A DNA stretch of 64,000 nucleotides from Anolis carolinensis (lineage: Eukaryota), in NCBI RefSeq assembly GCF_035594765.1, contig NC_085846.1, forward strand, positions 57,461,190-57,525,189, given 5' to 3'. A model generated the notes under the pieces. That model saw nothing but the letters and a program-made list of their open reading frames with translations. It searched no databases and had not been told where the DNA came from. The stretch's first letter is position 1. Each line of letters begins with the position of its first letter. Shown here piece by piece: positions 5,398 to 60,918 of this stretch. A program made the position numbers and the translations under genes.

Positions 5398-6346
5398 TAT
5401 TGTCGAAAGCTTTCAGGGCCAGAATCACTGGGTTGCTGTGAGTTTTCCGGGCTGTAAGGCCATGTTCCAGAAGCATTCTCTCCTGATGTTTCGCCCACAT
5501 CTATGGCAGGCATCCTCAGAGGTTGTGGGGTCTGTTGGAAACTAGGCAAGTGGTGTTTATATATGTTGTAGAATGTCTAGGATGGGAGAGAGAACTCTTG
5601 TGTGTTTGAGGTAAGTGTGAATGTTTCGATTGGCCAGGTTGATTAGCATTGAATGGCTTTGCAAGCTTCAAACTCTGGCTGCTTTGTGCCTGCTGGAATC
5701 CTTTGTTGGGAGGTGTTAACTAGCCCTGATTGTTTCATGTCTGGAATTCCCGTTTTCTAAGTGTTGTTCTTTATTTACTGTCTTGATTTCAGAGTTTTTT
5801 TTTTAATACAGGTAGCCAGATTTTGTTCATTTTTATGGTTTCCTCCTTTCTGTTGAAGTTATCCACATGCTTGTGGATTTCAATGGCTTCTCTGTGTAGT
5901 CTGGCATAGTGGTTGTGTTCTCAAATAATATGCTGTGTCCAGGTTAGTTCATCAGGTGCTCAACTATGGCTGAACATGAAAATGAACAAAATCTGGCTAC
6001 CAGTATTAAAAAACGCTAAGATCAGGACAGTAAATAGAGCAACACTCAGAAAACAGGGGAATTCCAGACAGGAAACAATCAGGGCCAGCTAACACCTCTC
6101 AACAAAGGATGCCTCTGGGCACGAAGCAGCCAGGCTTTGAAGCTGAAGGGCCATTCAGTGCTAATCAAGGTGGCCAATTACAACATTCACACTTGCCTCA
6201 AACATTCCACAGATATATAAACTTCACTTGCCTAGTTTTCAACAGACTTCACAACCTCTGAGGATACCTGCCACAGATATGGGTTAACCATCAAAAGAGA
6301 ATGTGTCTGGAATATGGCCACACAGCCTGGAAAACCCACAGCAACC
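5398..6346. mobile_element. Penelope-like element with inverted arms
   Basis: Minus arm 5398-5970 and plus arm 5972-6346 are reverse complements. Contains a GIY-YIG C-terminal remnant ([17 protein letters not shown]). Degenerate 14-bp TSD TGGTYAATYCATTG. Confidence 0.85.
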
Positions 6347-11800: not shown

Positions 11801-12849
11801 TACAGTAGAGCAGGGGTCCCCAAACTAAGGCCCGGGGGCCGGATGCGGCCCTCCAAGCTCATTTACCTGGCCCCCGCCCTCAGTTTTATAATATAATATT
11901 TTATATCATTTTAAATAATATAATATATTGTATATACATATAATATTGATAATAATATTATAATGTTATACAATATAATACTAATAATAATACCATATAA
12001 TAATATTAATTATATGTTATATATTACATATAATATTACAGTATAGTGGTATAGTTCAATATAGTAATATATAATGCTAATATTGTGCTATGCTAATAAT
12101 ATATTGTATGTACATACAGCTTCTGAGTCCCCTTCGGGGTGAGAAGGGCGGGATATAAATGTAGTAAATAAATGTAGTAAATGAACAAATAAATAATTTT
12201 AGACTTAGGCTCGCCCAAAGTCAGAAATGACTTGAAGGCACACAACAACAACAATCCTAATTAACTTGACTATCTCATTGGCCAGAAGCAGCCCCACACT
12301 TCCCATTGAAATCCTGATAGGTTTATGTTGGTTACAATTGTTTTCATTTTTAAATATTGTATTGTTCTTTCATTGTTGTTGCTGTTTTGCACTACAAATA
12401 AGATATGTGCAGTGTGCATAGGAATTTGTTCATTTTTTTTTCCAAATGATAATTCGGCCCCTCCACAGTCTGAAGGATTGTGGACCGGCCCTTTGAGGAC
12501 CCCTGCAGTAGAGTCTCACTTATCCAACATAAACGGGCCAGCAGAATGTTGGATAAATGAAAATGTTGAATAATAAGGAGGGATTAAGGAAAAGCCTATT
12601 AAACATTAAATCACATTATGATTTTACAAATTAAGCACCAAAACATCATGTTTTACAACAAATCGACAGAAAAAAGCAGTTCAATATACGGTAACGTAAT
12701 GTAGTAATTACTGTATTTATGAATTTAGCACCATAATATCGCAATGTATTGACAACATTGAGTACAAAAACATTGACTACTAAAAGGCCAACTGTATTGG
12801 ATAATACAGTACATTGGATAAGTGGAGGTTGGCTAAGCGAGACTCTACT

Positions 12850-12889
<40 letters not shown>

Positions 12890-15800
12890 TAAAGCAGAGT
12901 AATAGAAAACAAATACACTCCTCTAAACCATAGGCAGAGGAACGTTAAGATAATACACATAAAGCAGAGTCATAGACAACAAACACACTCATCTGAACCA
13001 TATTTTCTTTGGCAATCTGAAGCTAGATAACCATGATTTAACTATTTAATATTTAACTATAGCTTAATGAAGCACAAAGGACATTATTTCCACCACTTCA
13101 GGTATTTCAGTATCAGTAAGACATTATGGTTTAAAAGTACCTGGTGTGGGTAATGATAAAATTGGCACAAAACACAGGAGCATGTTGGAGTTCTCAAGAC
13201 ACATTGTGTTTCCTTTTTCCAGTGGTAGTTACAGCATTGTTACCTGCTTCTAATGCACCACAATTCTGTGGTTGAGCCAAACTATACATAATCAGGATTG
13301 CTATACACCAACACCAATTTCATCTTTTAGAAAGCCAAGCAAGGGCGAAAAACAGATCAAATGAGGCAGTAGTTCTTCAGGATATTCTGTAAGTTCAAGC
13401 ATATCTAGGAATGAAACCCCCAGGAATGGTATATAGCAGCATTCCTCAAACTGAGCCACAGCTGTAGCCAACCTAAAAAAAATCATTGCTTATCGCTACT
13501 CATCACAGCATTTTAGTTAAATGTGTGCCAGAAGAAGAACCCCACATGTGCAAGATAAAAGCATATATTGGATCAGACACTCAGTAGAGAACAAAGCTGC
13601 TATATGCAAAGCTGGACAGAAGAAAAGAGAAGGGCACACTGAACAGCTAAATAAAAGTAGAAAGATAAAGTATGGGAAGGGGGAAGTGAAAAGTTAGTTG
13701 TTATTTTTACTGTTGATTCTATCATTTTTATATTGCATATTCCATCTTGAGGAGACTCGAAAGGGTGTTATAACCCCCCAAAGTGGATCCAGCATCTTCA
13801 ACTTTAAAGGTACAGATACTAAACGGGAAGAGGCCAAGAGACAGAAACGCCTCAGGGGATAACAGAGGAGGATGGTCAGCCCTTAATGAGAATAGAGCTG
13901 CAGTGTCTATCCCAAAGAGTCAGGCTTGCAGTCTATCTATAGACTATCATTCATGGCCAGGTATGAGGGTCTTCCAAGGGTAGAGTCTTGGTGGTGGGTC
14001 CATAAGTGACTGTGGAAACTTATTCGGGATCCACATGGTCTTTCACAAGGACATAGACTTCCAGATGGAAGGCAATCATGACAAGAGTTTGTTTGACATG
14101 CCTTCGCCTTAGTCCTGTATTTCTGCCTCCTCAAAATCCATAGCACTGTTGCTAACAGCTGATCTCCAGTTGCAATGCTCGAGTGCCAGGGCTTCCCAGT
14201 TCTCAGTGTTTATACTACATTTTAAGGTTAGCTTTAGGCCCATCTTTAAATGTCTTTTGAGGTCTAGTAACGTTTCATTTTCTGTTCTTGAGCTGAGAGT
14301 AAAGCAACTGCTTTGGGAGATAGTGATCAGACATTTGGACAACGTGGCCAACCCAGCAAGGTTCAGTTTCAATGCTGGTGGTATTTGCTTCTTTTAGAAC
14401 TCTGATGTTTGGCCGCCTGTCTTCTCAAGAAATTTGCAAGAATTTTTCCGGAATTTGAGACTGATGTTTGTAGATTGTCCATGTTTTGTAGGCATACAAT
14501 AGGCTTGCAATCTATATCTAAATCCATAATAAAAGTGAAAACCCGTATGTGTGTATGTGGCACAGGTGTCCACTCACACAGATAGCCTCCAGCCTCCACA
14601 AACAGGCTACTGTTCCCAGTGCTGAGAACCCAGCAAGTCACTCTTTTCCACTGACATTGCGGTTACAGCGAGCTCCATGAACATGTAGCCCAACCCCTGC
14701 CAATGTCCTTCCCAAACACTACGGCCCACCACCCAAGGAATGCTTTCATTTGGGGACAATTTCATCCTAAATTTTGCTTTTTCTTCCACCATAGGCAGGC
14801 ATCCCAGGGTTCTCCATTGCTGTGGAATTTGCATGACCCCGCCTACTGCCCTTCCCTTTCAAATCTGTCTTCATAACAAACAGAGCAGAATTGAGCTGCA
14901 ACTAAACTTACTGGAGGACTTTAGGGATTGACTGCACATGGTGGAAGTTGTAGTTCACCCTACATCAAGTCAAAGCACTGTGACTCCTACTGGGGAATTT
15001 AGAGGAGTTGTAGTTCACCTACACCCAGAACACTATGAATCCGAACAATGATGGGTCTGGACCAAACTTGCCAAACTTCATACCTGATATGCCCAGATTT
15101 GAATACTGGTGGGTTTGGAGGGGAATTGGCCTGGACATTTGGGAGTAGTAGGTACTGGGATTTATAGTTCACCTGCAATGAATGAGCACTTCAAACCTTA
15201 CCAATGATGGACCAGGACCAAACTTGGCACACAAAGCCCCCATAACTAATACAACTTATTGGACAAGTTTGGGGGAAAGGGAGTTATAGTTCACCTGCAT
15301 CCAGAGAAACAGTGATCCCCACTAACAATGGACCAGGACCAAACTTTGCACAGAGAAGCCTCATGACCAACTGAACATACTGCAGGTGTTTGTGGGAAGG
15401 GGCCTTTATTTTGGGAGTTGTAGTTTCACCTGCATCCAAAGACCACTGAACCCAGCTAATGACGGATCTGGACCAAATTTGGCATACAGACTGAACATTG
15501 CCTGCTGTGGATACTGACAGATGTTTTGGAGTAATTGCCCCGGGACTCTGGGAGTTGTAGTAGTTCACCCCCATCCAGAGAGTACTGCAGCCAGCCGATA
15601 ACCAACCAATGACATATCTAGACCACACTTGGTCCACAGGCCCAAAATGGCCAACTTATAATACTGGCAGGGTTTGAGGAAGATTGAGCCACGATTCTAG
15701 GAATTGTAGTTCACCCACTCCAAACAGAATACATAACATTGAAAGACAAATAATACCATTCTCAAATGACCCGGGCACCGCCGGGTCCTCAAGCTAGTAT

Positions 15801-36800: not shown

Positions 36801-39800
36801 AAAATGAACTTCATTTGAACATACCGGTAGTTCTCTACACACCCACCACACACATCCTCAATGACCACAGAGAACTGGACGAGAGTTAAGTTGGACACTA
36901 ATTTGTGAATATTTTGTCTTAATGTATTTTATGTACCTTTATCTTTTTAACAAGTTTATTTTCTTCTTCATCATCTGTTTCTGGGAATTCATATATTTTA
37001 ATTTTATGCTCCTGGATTTCTTTCATTATCTGAAAATGAAAAAAAAAAGGTTAATGGAAGACAGAAACAATGTTTCAACATGCTTTTCAACTATGTTGTG
37101 TGCTTTCTTCTTCCACACATAAATTCCACTAATCTCCACTGATGACCGAACCCTAAGAGCCACCAGGTTATGCTGCTATATGAGTGTAATTTCTTAATTT
37201 CGGAGGTCTTTTTTGCAACCAAGCTGTGTATATATATAATAGTAACCTTTCCAGACAAATTTCAAATTCCTTATGATCTCTAACACCTAGTATACTTAAG
37301 AAACATCTTCTTTTGTTGCATGGGGCAGTAAAGGTAGACTACCTATGGCATGTGGACTAAAAGCAGCCACACCCTGGACTCTCCACAGATATATATTTTT
37401 TCCTTTCCTTGCCTAGTTTATCCATGCCTCACCGCCTCTGAGGATGCCTGCCATAGATGTGGGCGAAATGTCAGGAGAGAATACTTCTGGAACATGGCCA
37501 CACAGCCCGAAAGACATACAACAACCCTGTGATCCCGGCCATGAAAGCCTTCGACAACACATCCTTATGCACTTTGAACAATTATCCGGTTGGGCATTGT
37601 GGGAACGTAATGACGGATTTTTACTTTGGTCAAATAAAGATCTTTTTTTTTTTTGGCTCTAAGCATGGTTCACTTCCTATGAGCTCAGAAGTGAATCAGA
37701 ACCACTCAAGAATAATGAAGTGATTTCTACATTCCTGGGTATCTGCCAAGGTAACCATAAGCATGCAGTTTTAAAATGGAAAAGGTTTTTAAGATTTCCA
37801 AATTTTCAGTCATGAGGTGACCAAACATGTGGAATGTTGCTGACAGTTGAATCTATAGGTATAAGATATACTAAAAAAAGATATAGGAATACGAATTACT
37901 AAAATAACTCATCATGTTGGAATTTGAGTTTCATAGAGTGCCAAAGACAAAGACACCTGTCTTTGCTACTACAGTAGAGTCTCACTTATCCAACATAAAT
38001 GGGCTGGCAGAATGTTGGATAAGTGAATATGTTGGATAATAAGGAGGGATTAAGGAAAACCTATTACACATCAAATTAGGTTATGATTTTACAAATTAAG
38101 CACCAAAACATAATGTTTAACAACCAATTTGACAGAAAAATAGTTCAATACGCAGTAATGCTATGTAGTAATTACTGTATTTACGAATTTAGCACCAAAA
38201 TATCACGATGTATTGAAAACATTGACTACAAAAATGCATTGGATAATCCAGAACGTTGGATAAGAGTGTTGGATAAGTGAGACTCTACCGTATTTTTAGA
38301 TGTGTGCTCAATCCTAGCTGTCTTTAAAGTGTTGAATGATGTGTATTTCAATGTTCTAGATCACACTCAAGGTCTGTGGGCCAAATTCGCCCACCATGTC
38401 ATTTCATGTGGTCCAGATGCTGGACTCCCAACTCCTAAACTCCTCATCATTACACATTATGACTATAGCTGATGGGAGTTGTGACACAGTAGCATCTGAA
38501 AAAATGCTTAGTCAGGGGTTTGAATTTAGATACAAGGCTTGTGGATATGATGTCGGGCTTTAAAATATTGTTTAATCTTTCCCCAACATCAGTACCACAA
38601 GTGCTGCTGGGTTGCAATTCTCATTAATCCCAATCTGCATGGCAGATAATTAAAAGTGATGGGAGTTGTTGTTCAATAACATTTGGTGACTTAAATTGGG
38701 TAAAAACTAAAGAGCACTGAACACTATGTAAACAATATATAGTTGGCCCTCTGTATGCATGGATTCTTTGTCCACGGATTCAATGACCCTTTGAAGGCAA
38801 CCATAAGGCTAATGTGGCCCTTGATGAAAATGAGTTTGACACCCCTCTTCTAGATCCTCTCTGATTTTGGAAGCCAAGCAGGGTCAGCCCTGGTTCCTAT
38901 GTGAGTGGGAAACTACTAATAAATACTAAGCACCTTATTTCAGAGAAAGGAACTGAGAAAGCCACTTCTCAGTTTTCCTTGCCTAAAAAACTACTATGAA
39001 CGTCAAGGGCTTTCCCTAAGTTGAAACATGACACATGGGAAAACTATGCAGGTATGTTTCACAAAAAAGAAACGAGAAATTGTGAGCATGTGTCTGCATT
39101 TACACTCTCCAGAATCTTGTCAGTATTCAGAATTTCTGTATCAAAGGATGAAAATTTGATGGCTAAGCATAATTGGCCCCAGGAATGCTCCTCAGACTCA
39201 AGATTTCCCCTTGATGATTCTCTTCTCCTAATTTCTGGCAGAAAAATGGTTCTACCAGTTTAGTGATGCTTCGAAATGCTGTCTCCCAACAGTAATCCCT
39301 CCAAGAACAGCTCAATGCCTATCCCCAAAAATATACTTGAAATGATATTTCTCCTACATACCCAAAATCAGTAAAAAAAAAATGAGGTGGTGAAACCCTC
39401 AAGGCTATGGAGCACGTTTGTCTTTGCTACATATCAAAACACTTTAAAATATAGTCCCTTTTGCCATTATTGAAACTATCTTTTCTTTCCTTTAGGAGTA
39501 GAGATACACTGGAATAATTTGTTGCCACTTCCTCTAACAATCTAATATCTATTGGGTGTTAATTCAAATGATAAAATACTAATTATTTATTTCAAAGTAG
39601 GTTTGAAACTTACAAGATCTAAAATGTGCAGATTTTAAATTCTTCCTTCTTGATTCCAAGGCAGAAATACAAACTCCATGTGAAAAACTGACCAATATTT
39701 TTCAGTACGCTATATTCTTGTCTGTGATATGCATTAATTTGGTTTGGGGTGGAGGGTGCAACTTCATATTTTGTCAATGGAATTTTAAACCTGCTTTAGA

Positions 39801-45800: not shown

Positions 45801-48800
45801 TATGTAATGTATACAGATTTAAGTATAATTTTCATTGTTATTGCACGCCTAAATCTATGTCACAGCCCAGATAAAAACAGCAGAGAAGAGTGAGACTGAA
45901 CAGGATAGTGAAAATATAGACTTTCTGTCAAGTGTTTAAAGCAAGCAATTTTCTTCAACTTCTAGTTATAGTAATCTTATCCAAGAATATAAAAGAATAT
46001 CAAGTAATAACATTATCCATTTAACTTTATTTTAAATCAAGTGATATTCAATAGTGTCTGCCACAATAGAAACACAACCTCAATATTGTTCTTATTCTGT
46101 AAGCGCAATGCACAATCGCGACTCCAGATAATTCAGCAGCACTTAACTTTTCTTCAAATTACTTCTATCATTTAAGTTTATGTACAGACACCTCACTCTT
46201 CTCAAAAGGTCCTTTCCTTTCACTAAGGTGTGCATGCTTTCTCATACCATAAAAGAGAAAGCTTGCAAAGGTTCCAGTCCAGGAGAACCCACCCACCAGG
46301 CTTGAAGTTTCCCACACACCCAACAATCTCCTATGCTCTGTACACTCCTTTTCCTCCTTGTCTGCTGTCTTGCTAGAAGTGTCACAGCCATAGCATTGGG
46401 AATGATGCTAGAGAGCAACAGATGTCAGTTAATGAAGCAAAGAATGGCTCAAGCCACTTTCAATTCAAGCATCATATTGTGTAGATATATTTGCAGTAAA
46501 CAAGGCTTCTAGTGTTCTGGAAGTTATGTACAAATTGGGAAAGAACAGAATTGTGATGTAACAGTGTGTTCCATAGCTACTTCAAGCAAGAGGTCAGACA
46601 GTAGCCTCCTTTAAAAAAATCCTTACTAAGCACAGGATGGAACAGGAAAACAGTGTGAAAAAGGAAGAACAAGTAAGGATGCCTCAGCAAACTCTTCCAA
46701 GATGTCACAAATTGTAGACCTCTTCAATTTTGGAATCCATAGGATTGAAGATAGGTGAAATAAGAATTTATGTGGCACAATGTTTTGGGCTGTGAGATTT
46801 CTCGTGCTTCGTGGTTATTTCAGAAAATGATAATGTTCTGATCAAACTTTGTAAGGTGAGGAGAACTGTGCTCAAAGCCATGGGCTATTATAGTGACATA
46901 TGGGATGATAAAAGAAACAGGTGAAGCAGATATCTCTGGATATATTTTGGAAAAATCTTTCAAGTGGTCTATAGAAAATTTCAAATATTTTCATTTACTT
47001 ATGAAAACCTACTTGGCCTGGTTATTTCACTTTAAATGTGCATATTATTAGTTCTGAAAAAGGTTTGGCAAAACTTTCTGAACTACTCTTTTTTGTGGTT
47101 TATGATTTTATCCACATTCCTTCCACATTATTGCTGCTTTTGGTACCAAATTTTCTGTTAAAGAAGTAATGCAAAAAGACATCTACTCCGTTAACTGAAG
47201 TAGACCTTCATTATAGCTATTCTCTAAAGTCTCCCTTCACATCCCACCGCCATTAAAATTGAAGTAGATGGTGACTGAAAGGGAGACCACAACAGCTCCA
47301 GGTCAAGAATTTGTTTGCTACAAATATTTGAAAGGCAGAATTTCCACATCCTTTTACTTCTAGATGATACGATTTTTATTTTCTCCGACTTATTAACATG
47401 TATTTTCTTCATGTTGTGCTGTTTCTTTGTGTATCATGCTACTTATCTCCTTTAAAATGACTATTTTTATTTTTTAATCTGATTTATCTTATTATATGCC
47501 ACATCTATTAAGTTATAGAAATGCACCTGTACAATTAAACCTGTCCTTCTGACGTATGATAAACAAGAAAGTTTCTGTGTGTTGTCGAAGGCTTTCATGG
47601 CCGGGATCACAGGGTTGTTGTATGTCTTTCGGGCTGTGTGGCCATGTTCCAGAAGTATTCTCTCCTGACGTTTCGCCCACATCTATGGCAGGCATCCTCA
47701 GAGGTTGTGAGATATGGATAAACTAAGTAAGGAAAGGAAAGAATATATATCTGTGGAGAGTCCAGGGTGTGGCAAGAGTCCTTTGTCACTGGGAGCCAGC
47801 ATTAATGTTTCAGTTAATCACCCTAATTAGCATTGGAAATGTTTTGTCTCATGCCTGGGGGCATCCTTTGTTCCGTCAAGTCCTCAGAGTTTTGGTTCCC
47901 ATCTACTGTTTTGATTTTGGAGTTTTGTAATACTGGTAGCCAGATTTTGTTCATTTTCATGGTTTCTTCTTTTCTGTTGAAATTGTCCACATGCTTGTGG
48001 ATTTCAATGGCTTCTCTGTGTAGTCTGACATGATAGCTGTTGGAATGGTCCAGCATTTTTGTGTTCTCAAATAATATCTTGTGTCCAGGCTGGTTCATCA
48101 AATGCTCTGCTATGGCTGATTTCTCTGGTTGAATTAGTCTGCAGTGCCTTTCATGTTCTTTGACTCTTGTTTGGGCGCTGCGTTTGGTGGTCCCTATGTA
48201 GACTTGTCCACAGCTGCATGGTATCCGGTATCAAGACAAAGATCCACCCAGAGGAAAGGTGTTCTTACCATACATCAAGGGAACCACTGACCGCATAGGC
48301 AAACTGATGAAGAAGCACAACCTACAAACTATCTACAGACCCACAAAAAAAATCCAACAAATGCTACGGTCAGCGAAGGACAAGAGGGATCCTCTCTCTT
48401 CTGCAGGAGTCTACCGGATACCATGCAGCTGTGGACAAGTCTACATAGGGACCACCAAACGCAGCGCCCAAACAAGAGTTAGTTTATCCATATCTCCATA
48501 TCTTACTTAGTTTATCCATATCTCACAACCTCTGAGGATGCCTGCCATAGATGTGGGCGAAACGTCAGGAGAGAATACTTCTGGAACATGGCCACACAGC
48601 CCGAAAGACATACAACAACCAAGAAAGTTTCTTTTTGGAATCTCTACAGAGGATCCTTCTGTAACACTACCTAGAAATTATGTATGCATTTTCAGTTGGA
48701 GTATTACTGAAATTTCATGTAGAGAAGATTTATCTTTTTTGAAGAGGCTTCATTCCACATTCTTGCTACTAAGTCAGATATCTGTTCAACTAAAAAAAAA

Positions 48801-51800
48801 GAAAAAAAAAAGCCTGAAGCCTATACAGATTGCAAGCAACAGATGTGGCAACCCCACAGACAAAACAAATGATGTAATAATATCCGATCTAAAATATGAT
48901 TTTAAAAAAAATCACAGCTTTCTCTGAGGACAAGAGAATGTAATGTGAAAGAATGTTTTCCAAACATACCTGCACAGTCTTCTTTATTCTATGTGAAGGT
49001 CCTGGATATTCTGGAGAATACAGCTCTGTCAGGAACAGCGAATTGATTAATGTTGATTTCCCCAATCCAGATTCACCTATTGGCGAGGGAATGTCACCAG
49101 TTAGAGGGATTATCCATGGTTACTAAATGGTTTAAAATACTTTCCAAATCAATTATTTTAAAAATGATAGGAAATATTTCAAATGAGACACAAATAAGTT
49201 ACTGTGTACAACGCAAAGTAAGACTTTTCTCATTTTCCTATTCCCAGTCAACCCTGGTCATTGTCACCTGAGCCCCAAGTCTCCTTGGAAAACTATTCGA
49301 ACAACTACGGTTTTTAAAAAGGCTTGCTTCAGTATGGTTCACATGGGTGACATTCATCTGAGAATATGAGGACAAACCATAGTATCCTGTTTCATCTGAA
49401 CAGGGAAATTATATTAATTAGATCCACAAGAAGCCAGGATTTTATATACAATCAAAGCACAGTATAATAATTTAGTTCCTAAACTGGGCAAACACAGCAT
49501 CTATGTTCAGAAGAGATGAGAAAATCTTATTGGAGATCTCCTGGTTTAATGGTGGCTGAGTGTAATTTGCATCTTTTAAGACATCAATGCAACATGTAGA
49601 ATCTATTTAGTGGAAGGCCCTTGAAGCCTGAATTTCATTCCTACCAAGACCATTTATCTGCCAATAAAGGTCAAACTTAAAAGAGTTTCAGAACACATGG
49701 ATATGATTTCTGATAAAACCCAGACAAATGCTTTTTCCCAGACGTTTACTATAGGAAACCCCCATCAACATTAGAAAATTATCGTTTCAAAACAGAAAGG
49801 CAAAATAACTTGTTCTGTAGCATCTTAATATGGCAACCCCCCCCCCCAAATTGTAATTGAGACTATGTGAAGTAACTTATTTCTAAACAAGCAGGTCTCT
49901 AGTATTCTATATACTGTATATAAAAATGTTATGGACTTTTGGCCTAGAAGTAGGCAACGAAACTACACGACCAAGAACCACAAAACTTCGCAACACAACC
50001 CAACGACCTTGCCGCTAGGTTCCTACAACAAAACCCAACATCTGGGATGGAACCAGGACCCCAAAAATCCCAAAAATAGGAAAAAGCCATCTGCGCTTGC
50101 GCCGCTGCGGCCATCACGCGCCCCACCCCCCTCAAAGGTTGCTCGCACGCTCGCCTATTCCTGCTGCCACAACCATCTTCACAATGTGCGCGAGGAAATA
50201 GAGAGGGCGAATAAAGCGGTGGGTTACTCTCCGGGGCTCACCGTTTCTTCGGCGCTTTCCTTCACCGTTTCACCAAACCCACCGCATCTTTGGAAGGCGG
50301 AAAGAAAGAAACACTGCCCAGGAAGACAGCAAAGGCGGCGAAAGCAACAACTGTGGCTCAGCAAGGTGAACCCTATGCGGGGAAGGGAGGGAGGGAAGAG
50401 GCTGTGAGAGCAAGGTAGCCTCAAGACCCTGTTGGGGGGGGGAGGAAAGGGGGCGGCCGGGCGCCTTTCAGGTGACAAAAGCCCGCACCCACACGAGGGA
50501 CTCAAAATGGTGATGATGGACACACCATCCTCGAAATTGCGGCCCTCACGACCCTATCCACTGCCAGACTGCTATACATGTCTATGCCAGGCATCCTCAG
50601 AGATTATGACATCAGTTTAAAAAGAGACAAGTGGGATATTTATCTATCTCAGCAATGATATCCAGGATGGGACAACTCTTATCTGTCTGAGGCAACTGTG
50701 AATGTTCCACTTGGCCACCTTCATTACCATTGAATGGCCTTGCACCTTTAAGGCCTGCCTACTTCCTGCTTGAGAGGGGGAATCCTTTGTTCGGAGATAT
50801 TCGCTGGCCCTCATTATATCATGTCTGGCATTCCCTGATCCCTCACTGCTATTCTTTATTTAACTGTCCTGATTTCACTGATTTTTTTAATACTGGGAGC
50901 CACATTTTGTTCATTCCAGGTAGGCAGGAAGCATCCAGCTTTTGAAGCTAAAAGGCTATTCAGTGCCGATTGCAACATTCACACTTGCCTAAAGCAAACA
51001 ACAGTTCTTTCTTCCATCCTGGTCATTCCACAGAAATATAAACCCCACTTGCTTACGTTACAACACATTTCACAACCTCTGAGGATGCCTGCCATACACG
51101 CAGGCAAAATGTCAGGAGAGAATACATTTGAAACATGACCAGGAGAACTCAGAACAACCCATTACAAAGAGAAACAAAAATAATAAAATAAATACAAATA
51201 CATAAAATAAAATAATAAAATATAATATAGTAGAGTCTCACTTATCCAACGTTCTGGATTATCCAATGCATTTTTGTAGTCAATGTTTTCAAAACATCAT
51301 GATATTTTGGTGCTAAATTCGTAAATACAGTAATTACTACTTAGCATTACTGCGTATTGAACTACTTTTTCTGTCAAATTTGTTGTATAACATGATGTTT
51401 TGGTGCTTAATTTGTAAAATCATAACCTAATTTGATGTTTAATAGGCTTCTCCTTAATCTCTCCTTATTATCCAACATATTCGCTTATCCAACGTTCTGC
51501 CAGCCTGTTTATGTTGGATAAGTGAGACTCTACTGTACATACAAATAGTAAAATAAAAGAATACAAAAACCAAAGAATAACAAAGAATAACAAAAACAAT
51601 ACAATAAATACAAATAATACAATAAAAATAATGAAAAACAAGAACAAAAAATAAAACAAAATTAATACAATAAAATACTGTAATAAAATAACTAAAAATA
51701 ATATAATAAAATCATAAAATATAATAAATAAAAATAATAAAATAAAATAAAATAAAACATTTAAAAAAGGAAAATAAAAAATCCACAACAATTTTTAACC

Positions 51801-54609
51801 AATACCACCAAACTATGCCACAGCAACGTGTGGCTGGGCACAGCTAGTATTCTATATGGGAAAGCACCATAATACAAATTCTTTCCCACTCAATTATTTG
51901 TAAAATCAGTGACTGGCTTGACATGTTTCAAGTTATTTTTATATATGTTTAAGTTTAAGTGTACTAACTCATAATTATCTGGCATAAGGATCTGTTCTAT
52001 TCAAATGCAAAGATGATATACATGAATAAAGAAAAGTTACTTTGTTCTAATATGGTTGTTACATAAAAAACCCATGCCGATTATCTCAGAATTGTGACAA
52101 TGAAGTTACTGGCTCTCATAAAAAGTCAATTTGTAGTGGAAAATGGTTGAGGGCTATGTACAAACTGATAGAGTGAAAGACTGAATTATTTTCAGATAAT
52201 AATCAATAGACCTAGAATAACCTTTTTAAATTTGAAAAACAACCCTATAATACAAAGAGCAGCTTACAGTCGCCTTACTTTTGTTTGTGTATATGGAAAT
52301 TGTGTTTAAGTCTACAAATTTTGGCTCAGATTAACAGCCAATGATTATTTTCTACTCCCTAGCTGTGACACCTATTTCTACCATGATCCTGCAATAATTA
52401 TTATGTTGCTGCAAAAGCTTTTTCATTCAGGCAAAACCCATATCTCTGTGCTAGATTTGTTTACTAGACGTGCCTCAACCCAAGCAATTTGGTGCTGCTC
52501 GTCCTAAGCAATTTGTCAAGCTTCTCCTGTATCTCTCTACTGAGGATAAATGGTAACAACAGACCTAGCCTTATCGGTCAAGGGAAAGGACACTTTTTGG
52601 AGTTGGAGAAGACAAAGACCATGGCATCTACAGATGAGTGCCTGTATTTTACCATCATGGTTTTATACACATGCTCACCTAAGGTCTATACAAAACAGTC
52701 CTGCCTGCTGGCATCTGTGCATATAGTGTAAATATCTGCAATAACAAAGATATTGCTCTAATAATATTGTATACAAAGAATGGTATGAAACTCCAGCCAT
52801 GCAACATCACAGACAAGATGCCTTGCTATTTTGTGAAAGCTTATGCCATATGCACAAATGTCAGGGGCATGCCTACTTGTTATATGCAGTGTAGGCATAG
52901 TTACTCAGTATGGTTCACTTCCCCCAATGTGAATTGGACAAGTCTCAAAGTAAAATTACTAAACAAGGCTTGAATAATTTGTACCTATTACCCTATAATA
53001 GTTAAAAAAGAAATTTCTGGAAAGTAAAAAATTAGGAATTAATGAGGTTCTCTGATGATCAAATTCCTGATTCAGACAGACTTAAAATTGTGAAGAATGC
53101 GAAATATAATGATTAAGGCAGAAAAATAACATAAAAACAATAATTAAAGCAGCAAACAATTGCCCCAAAATCTTTTAGGATATCTCTCAATTAGATGTAA
53201 TAATAATATAAAACAGAGACAGAAAGGAAAATGGTCATGTCTAAAGCCAACTTATTTGCGAAATATAATAATTTTGCTTCTGTCCAGTGTATGCTAAATA
53301 CAGTTTACAAATTATACTTAAAATAACTACCATCTATCTATAATTAGCTAAATTAATTCTAACCAACTTTTTAGACATGCCATTTGGGTTCAATCCATTG
53401 TGATTGCCAACAAAGGCTCTTATTCTAGTATTTAGCTCAGTGATTCACAAACTGTGTGCCCAGGCACTGTGAGGCACATCAAGGAACCCAAAGGAGAACC
53501 ATAGAAAATTTAATCTGCATTCCTTTTTTCAATTGGTTTAAAACCTTGGCATTTCAAGTTAAAGTGCAAGAAGGAGCAAACCTATCTTTGCCCAAGAAAC
53601 TAGAGAGTGGTTGCCACACAGAATAGATTACACTAGGCTTGATAAACTGATCAACATAGCACAATAAATCCATGTGTGAGTTTATGCTAGGCTGAGCCAT
53701 ATATCACCACCATCCCTAAACAGCTCCTCATAGAGTCAGTTCTTTCTTCATGGAAGGCAGACAGGAACACAGGAGTGTCTGGCTATGTTCCCACAGCAAA
53801 ATGTGGAATGATTACAATTAAGACCTCTAAAGGACCCTGCCTATCTTTTCATAACTGGCTATAGGAAGAATTATCAGTGATCCTGTCAGCTGTCCATTAA
53901 GTAGGGGATGGTTCTTTTAGAGGCTGTTCAGAAAGCTGAAAGGTTGGTATTACATACAGATTAAAAGAACACCAACCCTCGCAGTACACCCCAAAAAGAC
54001 ATAAGCATGTGTAAGAAAAACTTATGTATGTATGTATGCAAGAGGATGCCAGGGTGCACATAAAGGCAGCTTTGATTTTTTCATTATTAAAGCATTTATT
54101 ATTTCTTTAAAATAATTAATAAGAAATAAATGTCAAAACCTGCTGAAAAACTTTTCCAAACTCTCTTCATCTAAACGTTTTTCCCAGATGTCTTAATACA
54201 GGGGTCCCCAAACTAAGGCCCGGGGGCCGGATGCGGCCCTCCAAGGTCATTTACCTAGCCCCTGCCCTTAGTTTTATAATATAATGTTTTATATCAGTTT
54301 TAATCATATAATATATTGATAATAATATTATCATGTTATAAAATATAATACTACTAATAATACCATATAATAATATTAATTATATGTTATATATTACATA
54401 TAACATTACAGCATAGTGGTATAGTTCAATATGACGATATATAATGCTAATATTGTGCTATGCTAATAATATAATGTATTGTATGTACATACAGCTGCTT
54501 TGAGTCCCCTTCGGGGTGAGAAGGGCGGGATATAAATGTATTAAATAAATGAATAAATAAATAATTTTTGACTTGGGCTCGCCCAAAGTCTGATATGACT
54601 TGAAGGCAC

Positions 54610-54650
<41 letters not shown>

Positions 54651-57600
54651 CCTAATTAACTTGACTATCTCATTGGCCAGAAGCAGGCCCACACTTCCCA
54701 TTGAAATCCTGATAGGCTTATGTTGGTTAAAATTGTTTTCATTTTTAAATATTGTATTGTTCTTTCATTGTTGTTGTTGTTGTTTTGCATTACAAATAAG
54801 GCATTTGCAGTGTGCATAGGAATTTGTTGGGTTTTTTTCCCTTTCAAATGATAATTCAGCCCCTCAACGGTCTGAAGGATTGTGGACCGGCCCTCTGCTT
54901 TAAATGTTTGAGGACCCCTGTCTTAATACTTCCATTTTCCTACATTTCTCCTACCAAGAAATTGCCTGGACAACTGCCTTGAAAATACTAGAGTTACCCA
55001 TATTTTCCAGAACAGTTTAAACTATTTCCCTTATTAGTGCAAATTAGATAGTATGTTAATTTTGTGAAATAATACTCCTTGTTGTGAGGTTACTGAAAGG
55101 ATGCGGGCAGGATAGGGATGTACTGGGAAAAACTGCAAGTTATTTTTGTTATAGTTGTACAATTGTACATAATTGCTACAATTGAGGAAACTTCAGGGGC
55201 TCCTTTCACCCTCATTTTTACACCTATTGGGGTGAAACTTGCTACAATGGTAGAACCACTTTTAGCCCACCAAGTTTCAGAACATTTCACATCCACGGAT
55301 TTTTATATAAACATTTTTTAAAAAATAACAACAGCTATCTCCTTGAATTTTCTACACAATGACACAAGATAATAGGGGATCATTCCCCCCAACTTTCAAA
55401 AATATTCATACATCTACTGATTTTAGAGAATTGTTTTTAAGAATTCTGGAAAATGTAGTTTAGGGCATGGCCTTTATCTGCTATAGGGCTTCTCACTTTC
55501 CCAAACTACATTTCCCTGAATATTGTGCTTTCTTTTCCAGAGAATCTGCTTTCTCCTGTTTTTCCTCTCCTAATGGTGAGAGGACAGGCAGCCTTTCTGG
55601 CTTTGATTTGCTTCCTTGCGCAGAAAATAAAACTGACTTTTGGGGGCTTCTGAGATTTACAAAATGCAAATGAAAAAGTACTGAGTAAGTTTAGATTCTT
55701 ACGTTTTTGGCATGGGCCATGCCCACCTGTCAAGTATTGCCTCGTAAATATGAATTTAACAAATGTAATACGACTTACGAAAACTAATGAAAAATGCACA
55801 TCTCTACTTAGTACTATTCATTTCAATGGGTTTGCCTTAGATTGGTTATCACTGGATTTCAAATAAATTTAGGAGGAAGCAAGACACAATCCACATTCTA
55901 GCACAGGGGTCCTCAAACTTTTAAAGCAAAGGGCCGGCCTACAATCCTTCAGACTGTTGAGGGGCCGAATTATCATTTGAAAAAAAATACGAACAAATTC
56001 CTATGCACACTGCACATGTCTTATTTGTAGTGCAAAACAACAACAACAATGAAAGAACAATAAAATATTTTAAAATGAAAACAATTTTAACCAACATAAA
56101 CCTATCAGGCCAATGAGATAGTCAAGTTAATTAGGGTTGTTGTTGTTGTTGTTGTTGTTGTTGTGTGCCTTCAAGTCAAGTGGGCGAGCCTAAGTCTAAA
56201 ATTATTTATTTATTCATTTACTACACTTATTTATTACATTTATATCCTGCTCTTCTCACCCCGAAGGAAACTCAGAGCAGCTGTATATACATACAATATA
56301 TTATATTATTAGCATAGCACAATATTAGCATTATATCTTACTATATTGAACTATACTGTAATATTATATTTAATATATAACATGTAATTAATATTATTAT
56401 ATGATATTATTATTAGTATTACATTGCATAACATGATAATATTATCAATATCATCTATATATATAAAAGAGTGATGGCATCACGGCGATGGACAAAACAA
56501 CAAATCTACAGCCCCCCCAAACTCGAAAATTGGCAACGCAATCCATCATCCCCGCCTCCAGTAAGATACAACAAATTTACACATAAAACACTATCACAAC
56601 ACCAAAAAATGCCAAAACTAAGTACGCATGCGCAAAAACACCATGCTTCAAACCTTTATGGCGCTCGCGCGGCTCCAGTAAGATTTATAGGACAAACACA
56701 ATCACAGGGCCACAAACGGCCAAAAACTGCAACAGGCGATGTGCGCCTGCGCGCACCCCCCATCCCTTCCCGCGCGCGCACACACACACCTCGCCTCAGA
56801 GCTGAAGGAAGGAAGGCAGGAAGGCTGATTCCTTGCTGGGCGCGGGATGGAGGAGGCCGCGCTGGGAGGCGTGCGGGCCTCACGTCGCTCTCTGCCCTCT
56901 CCCCCTCAATGTCCTCCCCCCTCAGGGCCCATGGAGGGCCCCGGTTGCCGTTCAGGCCCCCTCCTCCCGCCCCTCTCCCCTCCCCCCAATGCGAGGAAGG
57001 CCCCGCGGAGCCCCCCCCGCCTCACCCTCTCTCCTCCTCCTCCCTTCTCGGTTCTTCTCGGAGGTCTTCAAGCTCTTCAAGGTGAGGGGGGAAGAGGAGG
57101 GCACGGCCCTCGAGCAGGCCTGGACCTCCCCTCGAGTTGTTTGGGGCGCCAACCCCCGCCCTTCCCGGCCTCAGGGCCCTTCCTTTTCCCCCTCACCCGG
57201 TTAAACGGCTGATGGGGAAAAGGAAAGAGCCTCAGGCCAGGAAGGGTGGAAGTTGGCGCCCAAAACAAGTCAAGGGAAGGCCCAAGTTGGCCCAGGCTGA
57301 GCTTCCCCCTTTTCTGTTGTTGTTATTGTTGTTGTTGTTCTCACCCACAAATGACAACCCCTCCAATGCCTCAGAAGCCCCCCTTTTTCCCCTCTCAAAC
57401 CCTATCGCCCTCACCTTTCCCTTCCCTGTAATAATTATTAATATAATAACTGATCATCAGTTAAGAATGTAATAATCACCAATAATAATACTAATTTATT
57501 ATTAGTATAATACTGATAATCATTCGAGAACATAATAATTCATAATAATAGTCAGTTCTTATTATTATAACACTGACAATCATTCAACAATGTATTAACA

Positions 57601-58661
57601 AATCGTAATAATAGAAAATTATTTTTATTATTATAGTAATAATCATTCACAAATTAATAATTATTATTATAACATTGATAATCATTCAACAATATAATAA
57701 CAACTAATAATAAGTAGTTATTATTTTTATCACAATGATAATCATTCAAGACTATAATAATTATTATTGTTATAACAGAAGGCGCCTCATATAATCCACT
57801 TCTAAACAAATAATATCACATTATAAATATACACTAGAATCTCACTTATCCAACATAAACAAGCCGGCAGAACGTTGCATAAATAAATATGTTGGATAAT
57901 AAGAAGGGATTCAGGAAAACCAATTACACATCGAATTAGGTCATCATTATACAAATTAAACACCAAAACATCATGTTATACAACAAATTTGACACAAAAA
58001 GTAGTTCCATGCGCAGTAATGCTATGTAGTAATTACTGTATTTGCAAATTTACCACCAAAATATCACAATACATTAAAAACACTCACTCCAAAAACATTG
58101 ACTATTAAAAGGCAGACTCCATTGCATAATCCAGACCATTGCATAAACGAATGTTGGGTGAGATTCTACTGTAATATGAAATAATTACTGTGGTACAATA
58201 ATACACAACAATATCATCTCAGGACAGTAAATAAAGATCAACACTCTAAAAACACAGCTATTCCATCCAGGAAACAATCAGGGCCATCTAACACCTCCCA
58301 CCAAAGGATTCCCCCCTTCACACAGGAAACCACCCACACTTTGAACCTACAAGGCCATTCCGTACTCATCACTCTCTCATCTCAGCACAGTAAATAAACA
58401 ACAACAGTTTGAAAACACACAAATTCCATCCAGGAAACAATCAGGACCACCTAGCACCTCCCAACAAAGCATTCCCCCCCTCTAACACACGGAACCACCC
58501 AAGCTTTGAAACTACAAGGCCATTCCGTACTCTGGGGCCAATTTGCAATATATTAATATATATAATAATACAATACATATATAATACAATACATTGTATA
58601 TACATATAATACTGCTAATAATATTATAATACACTACAATATAATACTAATAACAAAACAA

Positions 58662-58705
<44 letters not shown>

Positions 58706-60918
58706 CTACTAATATTGTGAAATAGTCGTATATGTTATAGCGTAATATCCTATCATATGTCTTTAATGTAATAAATGAATAAATAATACTGTATAATTTT
58801 TGTTGACGGTCACAACAAAAATAAAACCCAATGTAGATTGACCAACATCACTAAAAAAAAGCCACAGCAACGCGTGGCCGGGCACAGCTAGTATGTATAT
58901 ATATTATATTATTAAAACTGATTTATTTATTTCGTGTCAAAAGCATTGGTACAGCAAATACATTTCAAATAATGGAAATAAAATAGAAAAGAAAAGAAAT
59001 CACAAGCAACTAAATAGTTTTGGACCAAAACTGATATAAAAATATTATATTATAAATGAGGGCGGGGGCCAGGTAAATGACCTTGGAGGGCCGCATCCGG
59101 CCCCCGGGCCTTAGTTTGGGGACCCCTGTTCTAGCATGTTAGAGGCAGCATAACCTCTAGGCAATTCATAAATGGGCATATCTAATCAATACTCTTCAAT
59201 TCCCACAAAGTGGAGGATTAAGTAGCAATTCCCCCCTCTAAACTACTGGAAGTAGTTTGATATCATCTGAAAAGTTTCAAAGAGCAGGATTCCATGATTC
59301 TTCCTTATCTGTTTTATAGATTATAATTGTAATTCCAACCAGTTATCTTCACAATAAAATGTTATGCTCTTCAAAAATCTTTTGAGATTTCTAAAAATAG
59401 ATGGTAGAACCCTAAGTGTTAATATCAAAAGATACTTTCAATAAAGGTGCTTCAAAACTAAATATGTGACTCTAATCACAGGTCTCACATAATATTTGCA
59501 ATCTCTGCACTTTCCACACATTAAATTTCAAAAGTATTAAAAAGGTTACTAATTTCAGTGCCATGATTTAAAACTATTGTGGCCCATTGATTGCACAAAT
59601 AGATGAATAAGCAACAGTGACAACAAATGCAGATTAAAACATAATACAGAACAATGCAGCGTAGAATGTTTCAAGCTAGGTTTCATAATCTTTCCCACAG
59701 TAGCTTCAACCCATGCTCTGCAAAACTTATAACTTAGACAGAAACCCAACAATAACAAAGAACCTGGCCACCAAAAACAAAAAAAGCTTTGACACTCCTG
59801 AGTTACTACTTCTATGCTTAACTTGCAGTCAACATAACTGCTCCGCAGACACATTTGCCTCATTTATAGCAAATAAAATGTTTCATGCATAAATACAGCA
59901 CATAAATAATGCACTTGCCAGACAGGAGCTCTCTGACATACACTTCAGATTTTTTTGTACCACCAGTATTTCGCTATACACTCATGTATAAGTCTATTAA
60001 TTTTAGTCAAAAAATCAACCCAAAAAACCTCAGCTGTGTTATTAATGAGTCAAAGTAAGTACTGAACTTTAAACCTTATAAAAAATGAACCATCATCTTC
60101 TCTGAGCAGAGCGGTGAAAGGAGAGTGCTTAATCTATACTGGGAAAAACTAAAAGAAGCACCAACTTCCCCTTATTGTCTCTGCCACAACACTGCTTTTG
60201 GCTTTTTTGAATGCCTGAGCCGGGAAATGGAGGCAGTGAGTAGGGGCTGCTCCCCCCACCTCCAAGTTGGCATTGGTGCTCTCCCCTATTCGTGGAATGA
60301 CCCTCGATTTATCCACAGGTCATATAAAAATCCAGAATTTTGTCCTCAAAACCTGCCCTTGACATGTATACATGAGTATATATGAGTACATGAGTATATG
60401 AGTATATATGGTAGATAATATTCCAAGCATGTATGAAAACACCAGTTTTAGTATTGCAAACTGTAAAAAAATCCACTAGCAGATAGGATTTCAACTAAGT
60501 GGAAGTAGATTTTAGAAAAAAAAATAAAGGAATGCAGCTACACAACTACAGAGCCAGTCTGACAATATGCAGCTTTGCCTTGTAAAATCCTGAAACACTC
60601 TGTTCCTCTTTGGCTCTGTTAATGAGGGAAATGTTAGACTACCATTGCATGCCTCTTTCAATGCTTTAGTAAAAGAAACAAAAATGCAGGAAGTTTACAC
60701 CCTAACCAGTGCAGCCTAAACAAATGAGCCAAATAAAAAACACTTCAGCTTTTGAATGAATTTAAATTAACAGTCCCCCCATCTTCAGAAAATAAAGCAG
60801 CCATCTAGGCAACACATAATGAAAGCAGTAAAAGTGCCAAAGATTAATTCTTGGCAATTCTGGATTCAATATTTCATGCATCTTTTATGAGTGCCAGTTT
60901 CATAAGGATACTTATTGA

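Follow-up and report, generated by a model that had tools for sequence, protein, structure and literature searches.

A second Helitron in an anole genomic window with a G>C skew in one arm of its Penelope cargo

We analyzed a soft-masked stretch of 64,000 nucleotides of the Anolis carolinensis genome (assembly GCF_035594765.1, contig NC_085846.1, positions 57,461,190 to 57,525,189 of the forward strand; hereafter, the window), which holds two non-autonomous Helitrons. In the one named Helitron 2, the first of two oppositely oriented arms of Penelope-type cargo has lost guanine through G>C changes on the Helitron top strand. This excess was observed directly in the alignments, was absent from the copies outside Helitrons, and agreed with the far stronger G loss in Helitron 1. 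Its likeliest cause, which we put forward tentatively, would be G lesions that arise while the top strand is single-stranded, become substitutions through translesion synthesis, and add up from one round of transposition to the next. Mutational asymmetry linked to Helitrons is possibly undescribed, and Helitron 2 would be its second, weaker instance in the window.

Strand-specific loss of G in the Penelope cargo

A BLAST search of 50400-51800 against the window, together with pairwise alignments, defined two oppositely oriented Penelope arms where an earlier reading of the sequence by itself (the original prediction) had placed them. Inverted dimers of this tail occur three times in the window (5398-6346, 47580-48620, and 50581-51160), the last being the pair of arms in Helitron 2. 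Features compared:

49906-51847, plus strand: Helitron 2, non-autonomous, 1.94 kb long, with its top strand on the plus strand of the window
56454-58891, plus strand: Helitron 1, with termini like those of Helitron 2 and much stronger G loss in its Penelope cargo and in its miniature inverted-repeat transposable element (MITE)
50581-50915, plus strand: arm 1, putative Penelope/Poseidon 3' tail in antisense, matching 5500-5831 in the same orientation
50916-51160 (alignment 50913-51161), plus strand: arm 2, the same tail in sense, matching 5429-5699 in reverse
5398-6346, no strand assigned: Penelope inverted dimer that lies outside the Helitrons and serves as reference and control

Nine copies were aligned, and the ancestral base was taken either from the agreement of the two reference arms or from a two-thirds majority of the four copies outside Helitrons; all arm counts are thus polarized against copies within the window. 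Before polarization, arm 1 differed from 5398-5960 by 18 G>C and 2 C>G, and from the other reference arm by 13 and 1. The polarized counts on the plus strand were as follows:

Reference-arm agreement, arm 1: G lost 24/67, C lost 4/41 to 5/42 (p=0.003); G>C 12, C>G 0
Reference-arm agreement, arm 2: G lost 10/32, C lost 9/52 (p=0.18); G>C 3, C>G 2
Two-thirds majority, arm 1: G lost 30/78, C lost 9/54 (p=0.007); G>C 14, C>G 0
Two-thirds majority, arm 2: G lost 11/42, C lost 13/63 (p=0.64); G>C 3, C>G 2

With the majority ancestor, the 14 G>C changes of arm 1 against no C>G gave a Fisher p of 0.0004, and the same arm had 15 G>A and 6 C>T; when both arms were pooled, G>C reached 17/120 and C>G 2/117 (p=0.0005). 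In arm 1, sites of G>C are spread evenly from 50587 to 50903 with no single cluster. Polarized G>C sites include 50587, 50696, 50722, 50727, 50812, 50903, and 51097, and those of arm 2 are at 51011, 51056, and 51097. All six examples of G>C quoted in the original prediction are visible in the alignments. Its statement that both arms carry the skew was borne out for arm 1 and not for arm 2 alone, where G>C affected 3/42 G and C>G 2/63 C (p=0.39). The per-arm count of substitutions that it had proposed, made here against four window copies, was likewise skewed in arm 1 and not in arm 2. The pattern expected of a single-stranded DNA (ssDNA) footprint, with complementary classes unequal on the strand that would be single-stranded and equal in controls, is seen in arm 1 and in the pooled arms, but not in arm 2 taken separately. 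The difference between the arms is itself not significant (odds ratios of 3.0 and 1.4, p=0.21; G>C per G, p=0.17; p values ranging from 0.17 to 0.23).

Probable dependence of the skew on the Helitron top strand

The Penelope segment shared by both Helitrons lies in sense in Helitron 1 (58205-58540) and in antisense in arm 1 of Helitron 2. When the Penelope pieces of Helitron 1 were compared with arm 1, the G/C differences were 14:0 and 16:0, all in the direction of G>C on the plus strand. Because these differences follow the plus strand in a segment that is oppositely oriented in the two elements, the comparison of sequences supports a skew that tracks the Helitron top strand and not the orientation of Penelope, mainly through the combination of both Helitrons. 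The two Penelope pieces of Helitron 1 have lost G at 17/30 and 21/30 sites and C at 3/36 each, and its MITE (57830-58172) has lost 23 of 57 G and 1 of 40 C.

Within Helitron 2, a test that needs no outgroup found that the 10 G/C differences between the arms, read in the Penelope sense, all set a G of arm 1 against a C of arm 2 (p=0.002); in the control dimer at 5398-6346, the same comparison gave 3 G/C versus 2 C/G. Under the rates of arm 1, a flipped skew in arm 2 was ca. 4,700 times less likely than a plus-strand skew, so that a flip with arm orientation, which had been named as the outcome contrary to the original prediction, can be set aside. However, the absence of any skew fits arm 2 as well as the same skew does (likelihood ratio, 0.62). 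Arm 2 neither adds to nor contradicts the top-strand reading, and the orientation test within Helitron 2 alone is uninformative. The idea that the bias follows Helitron polarity therefore stands for the two Helitrons combined and not for Helitron 2 alone. A consistent 5'-to-3' gradient of G loss was also considered and rejected: it fits Helitron 2, where arm 1 lost more than arm 2, but in Helitron 1 the loss rises toward the 3' end.

The skew could instead be unrelated to the Helitron, if arm 1 derived from a Penelope copy or subfamily that was already different, or hypermutated before capture, and arm 2 were an ordinary decayed copy. Only arm 1 is significantly skewed, and the lack of skew suits arm 2 equally well; in addition, an insertion of 6 to 8 nucleotides common to both Helitron-borne copies (arm 1 and the pieces of Helitron 1) is missing from the reference arms, which are thus not matched by subfamily. 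Yet differences between subfamilies give no reason for a single direction (14:0), and the pieces of Helitron 1 share the insertion but change in the opposite way in Penelope-sense terms, which is what a direction set by the Helitron strand predicts. Since the MITE, which belongs to an unrelated family, shows the same plus-strand loss of G in Helitron 1, we judge such an origin before capture improbable.

Selection offers another possibility, namely, that a less folded single-stranded top strand transposes better, so that changes breaking the pairing between the arms became enriched. As ssDNA, the free dimer at 5398-6346 folds into a near-perfect hairpin of 949 nucleotides (-321 kcal/mol, z=-40), and the dimer of Helitron 2 folds much more weakly (-83 kcal/mol over 591 nucleotides, z=-5), as selection of this kind would have it. 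Still, if pairing were what selection disfavored, a single class of change (G>C) confined to a single strand would not be predicted, and in Helitron 1 a single MITE and tandem, non-inverted Penelope pieces lose G without any long hairpin, which leaves selection highly improbable as the cause.

Controls inside and outside the Helitrons

A further MITE in Helitron 2 had been proposed as a clean internal negative control:

51226-51537, plus strand: MITE with 25-nucleotide terminal inverted repeats (96% complementary) and TA on both sides, set in an A-rich tract

Its identity to five other window copies is 91 to 95%, and it carries 13 substitutions over 301 sites (4.3%) when set against the majority sequence of six further copies in the window. 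Its spectrum is symmetric, with 1 of 40 G lost and no G>C, in keeping with the earlier description of it as near consensus. If the relative bias of the arms is scaled to its own divergence, ca. 3.7 losses of G and 1.5 G>C are expected, and the shortfall (1 and 0 seen) has probabilities of 0.11 and 0.21, respectively. The MITE is therefore clean but weak as a negative control, with little power because it is young and few losses of G are expected. At the intensity of Helitron 1, by arithmetic from the counts, it should have lost ca. 10 G, against 1 seen; it has escaped anything like the process that affected the MITE of Helitron 1, although a mild local process that continues today is still compatible with it.

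Repeats outside the Helitrons make better controls. A MITE of equal divergence at 12506-12895 is symmetric (G lost 11/61, C lost 10/42), as are the spectra of both reference Penelope arms when these are taken as the focal sequences, and this symmetry argues against a gene-wide transcription-coupled process or a sequencing artifact. The same repeats bear on a local process acting after insertion, whether an asymmetry coupled to transcription of the host gene or to the direction of replication, or transcription starting from the CpG-rich leader of the Helitron and exposing the non-template strand. Both Helitrons lie on one strand of one window, their leaders resemble CpG islands (observed/expected of about 1.0), and the MITE probabilities given above would suit a continuing process. 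Nevertheless, window repeats of similar or greater age outside the Helitrons are symmetric, the flanks of Helitron 2 are ordinary in composition, and the Helitron 2 MITE has lost a single G where the intensity of Helitron 1 predicts about 10, so we consider a local process very unlikely.

Mutation spectrum and proposed mechanism

G>C is asymmetric in both Helitrons, and in Helitron 1 the same is true of G>A and A>C. Counts of G>C, G>A, and G>T were 14, 15, and 1 in arm 1 and 9, 14, and 0 in the MITE of Helitron 1. The excess of A>C was one-sided, with 5 to 9 A>C against 0 to 1 T>G per piece of Helitron 1 cargo and 5 against 2 in arm 1. G>C showed a mild preference for a 5' A (22/87 versus 17/147, p=0.01). 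In the pooled cargo of both Helitrons, neither the APOBEC3 context (G followed by A, the bottom-strand TpC; 31/71 versus 68/163 elsewhere, p=0.89) nor the AID motif GYW (WRC; 28/61 versus 71/173, p=0.55) was enriched, and deaminase motifs were rejected as the context of the changes. Top-strand depurination is also a poor fit for the lesion, because the A rule predicts G>T and A>T, both of which are rare here; abasic sites in human cells mostly obey that rule (PMC4167244).

In the mechanism that we favor, rolling-circle transposition would peel off and transfer the top strand only, and guanines of this single strand would suffer lesions, such as oxidized or glycated G. Translesion synthesis, possibly associated with REV1, would then put G opposite the lesion and so yield G>C, less often G>A. 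Such changes would build up from round to round in the active copy's lineage, and cargo traveling in that lineage would gain substitutions that remove top-strand G, mostly G>C; the MITE would have arrived after the last of these rounds. We infer here the role of single-strandedness, the type of lesion, and the timing, including the origin of the changes during mobility. Helraiser cleaves and transfers the top strand alone, and its donor sites are re-synthesized and re-used (PMC5876387). As a speculative extension, which may well prove wrong, rolling-circle transposition of Helitrons in the vertebrate germ line could leave a cumulative loss of G (G>C and G>A) on the transferred strand; each piece of cargo would then record the rounds that it has ridden, more for arm 1 than for arm 2, and few for a recent MITE and a recent G-rich block.

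The damage might instead fall on the bottom strand, where cytosines exposed at the donor site would be deaminated, the uracil removed, and C inserted by REV1 opposite the gap. On the top strand, these C>G and C>T changes of the bottom strand would show up as G>C and G>A, and re-use of the donor would transmit them. The spectrum is indeed like the pairing of deaminase, UNG, and REV1, with G>C about as frequent as G>A and G>T far rarer, and the re-synthesis and re-use of Helraiser donor sites (PMC5876387) would serve this route too. Deaminase context is nevertheless lacking in both tests described above, and deamination of cytosine does not explain the one-sided excess of A>C; we regard bottom-strand damage as unlikely.

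Several observations weigh against G lesions on a single-stranded top strand as the explanation. G>T, the classic ssDNA change caused by 8-oxoguanine (8-oxoG), makes up only 1 of the 30 G losses in arm 1. Arm 2 alone lacks a significant skew (26% of G lost versus 21% of C, p=0.64), and at the rate of arm 1 the probability of three or fewer G>C there is 0.04, whereas joint entry of the two arms predicts an equal effect. A G-rich block at 50291-50530 persists in Helitron 2, which argues against a uniform purge of G. Given the insertion difference of 6 to 8 nucleotides, the reference arms may represent a slightly different subfamily. Finally, one strand of one window holds both Helitrons, and their orientation relative to the host locus therefore does not vary.

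Comparison with known systems

In maize streak virus, complementary substitutions on the virion strand are unbalanced, with an excess of G>T (van der Walt et al. 2008, PMC2572610). The likeness is that of an HUH Rep replicon with one strand transiently single-stranded, unequal complementary classes, and loss of G. However, the viral change is G>T, attributed to 8-oxoG and followed in real-time evolution, whereas here it is G>C (with G>A in Helitron 1) and almost never G>T, read back from the decayed cargo of a vertebrate chromosomal transposon.

Helraiser, which moves by "peel-and-paste" (Grabundzija et al. 2016, 2018; PMC4778049, PMC5876387), shares with our elements the 5' TC, the 3' CTAG, and a sub-terminal hairpin, and its exclusive use of the top strand supplies the asymmetry that the footprint requires. 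In the consulted part of PMC5876387, "mutation" refers to engineered mutants and no mutational footprint is mentioned; the authors argue there that the peeled strand may be copied almost at once by lagging-strand synthesis, which would limit its time as ssDNA.

In yeast, methylglyoxal lesions on ssDNA guanine give mainly G>C in a Rev1-dependent manner (Vijayraghavan et al. 2025, PMC11956917). Fixation of ssDNA G lesions mainly as G>C, coordinated by strand and dependent on Rev1, is the point of resemblance. In the yeast motif, the mutated G has C and G as its neighbors, in contrast to the 5' A favored by G>C here, and the yeast system employs an exogenous agent and resected telomeres. APOBEC/AID acting with UNG and REV1 (single-base substitution signatures SBS2/SBS13) produces clustered C>T and C>G on one strand, equivalent to G>A and G>C on the opposite one; our changes differ in lacking a TpC or WRC context, in affecting a DNA transposon instead of reverse-transcribed cDNA, and in the A>C excess of Helitron 1.

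Helitron families of the anole are known to carry Poseidon fragments (Novick et al. 2011, PMC3014272). One of them, Helitron-2N3_AC, is like Helitron 2 a composite, non-autonomous element of ~2 kb with Penelope-type cargo. The Helitron passages of the article that were consulted report capture of Poseidon and short interspersed nuclear element (SINE) fragments but no strand bias, and Helitron 2 is likened to this family by description only. In the limited literature that was covered, we came across no report of Helitron cargo with a strand-specific mutational footprint.

If the asymmetry is true and tied to transposition, natural copies would provide in vivo evidence for a vulnerable single-stranded top-strand stage of eukaryotic Helitrons. 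It would also represent a mutational signature (G>C, little G>T) distinct from that of ssDNA viruses and a molecular clock for rounds of transposition and for the order of cargo capture, and ages of Helitron cargo based on divergence would be inflated. Helitron 2 adds modestly to the case, since its two internal tests, arm 2 and the MITE, are underpowered.

Structure of the two Helitrons

Helitron 2 opens at 49906 with TCTATATA, and the identical 8-mer opens Helitron 1 at 56454; these are its only two occurrences in the window, and both elements thus start with the 5' TC of Helitrons. The 31-nucleotide end is found in exactly two copies (51817-51847 and 58861-58891), against 0 expected by chance, which differ from each other at 2 of the 31 positions. 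In Helitron 2 it combines a CTRR terminus with a short hairpin upstream; the stem is visible in DNA folds, although it is too small for significance against shuffled sequences. We scanned metagenome and viral contigs with this end and obtained no matches. No RepHel-sized open reading frame (ORF) was found in either Helitron, and both are therefore non-autonomous. Terminal features of Helitron 2:

49906-50078, plus strand: 5' leader rich in A and C, a homologue of the Helitron 1 leader, not depleted in CpG
51817-51847, plus strand: 3' terminus, consisting of the hairpin GCCACA GCAACG TGTGGC, a 9-nucleotide spacer, and CTAG at 51844-51847

Over ca. 170 nucleotides the Helitron 2 leader is homologous to 56454-56620; the local alignment scores 72, where shuffled sequences average 27 +/- 4.4 (z=10). 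The CpG observed/expected ratio is 1.0 to 1.16 in the leader regions (49907-50290 and 56462-56780) and 0.15 to 0.20 in the flanking intron; this level, like that of a CpG island, suggests youth or missing methylation. A protein search with a 158-amino-acid ORF of the Helitron leader returned nothing and no anole paralogue.

Helitrons usually insert between A and T without target duplication. The base 3' of the insertion is T in both elements, and the 5' flanking base is A in Helitron 1 and T in Helitron 2. At both ends of Helitron 2 we found a 14-nucleotide direct repeat, CTAGTATTCTATAT (49899-49912 and 51844-51857), composed of the Helitron 3' CTAG, TAT, and the Helitron 5' TCTATAT. It looks like a head-to-tail junction and not a target duplication, as though the integrated DNA were a little longer than one unit of a head-to-tail concatemer. 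Helitron 1 for its part sits within a DNA transposon (55906-59126) whose terminal inverted repeats are GGGGTCCTCAAAC (at 55906) and GTTTGGGGACCCC (at 59114).

Penelope tails and other segments

The label of Penelope/Poseidon tail comes from a protein motif recognized by eye in the ORF fragment of the fuller copy at 47580-48620, together with published descriptions of anole Poseidon elements (PMC11167929, PMC3014272), and should be taken as provisional. Those elements were described with pseudo-long terminal repeats and tails (PMC11167929). A nucleotide motif of the Penelope tails, CTGAGGA...CGAAAC, is present at 48529-48555, 5480-5505 (minus strand), and 37440-37470, and recalls the hammerhead core reported for anole Poseidon elements, although Rfam detected no hammerhead in the tails, whether the gathering threshold or E<=10 was applied. 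This nucleotide motif has decayed to GGCAAAAT in arm 2. The dimer at 47580-48620 is a young inverted dimer of Penelope type, with arm segments from 119/120 to 100% identical, and holds two ORF starts resembling a GIY-YIG endonuclease, head to head near 48230. A Pfam search with its ORF gave no GIY-YIG match, and the nearest relatives of the ORF fragment were unnamed proteins of other squamates at 60 to 70% identity, too distant to polarize the untranslated region.

Remaining segments of Helitron 2:

50291-50530, plus strand: G-rich, purine-rich block, with GC skew of +0.36 to +0.37 (G 89, C 53) and a four-tract G run at 50379
51538-51816, plus strand: A-rich low-complexity tract, continuing the tract at 51161-51225 to the left of the MITE

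Nothing else in the window is homologous to the G-rich block; its changes therefore cannot be polarized, and on the same ground it may be a late capture. A similarity of the block to GC-rich cargo in Helitron 1 was unconvincing (z of about 4, in low-complexity sequence) and was discarded. The G run, GGGGAAGGGAGGGAGGG at 50379-50395, lies on the Helitron top strand within this purine-rich block as a potential G-quadruplex and persists although the repeat cargo of Helitron 2 lost G.

With the 31-nucleotide 3' end included, the A-rich tract (51538-51847) is 62% A and 6% G, and its segment 51577-51636 is 85% identical to 51161-51220. Long A/T-rich, G-poor tracts of low complexity or tandem repeats adjoin the repeat cargo in both Helitrons (57430-57800 and 51161-51800), made up of units of ~62 to 124 nucleotides in Helitron 1 and of AAAT-like runs in Helitron 2.

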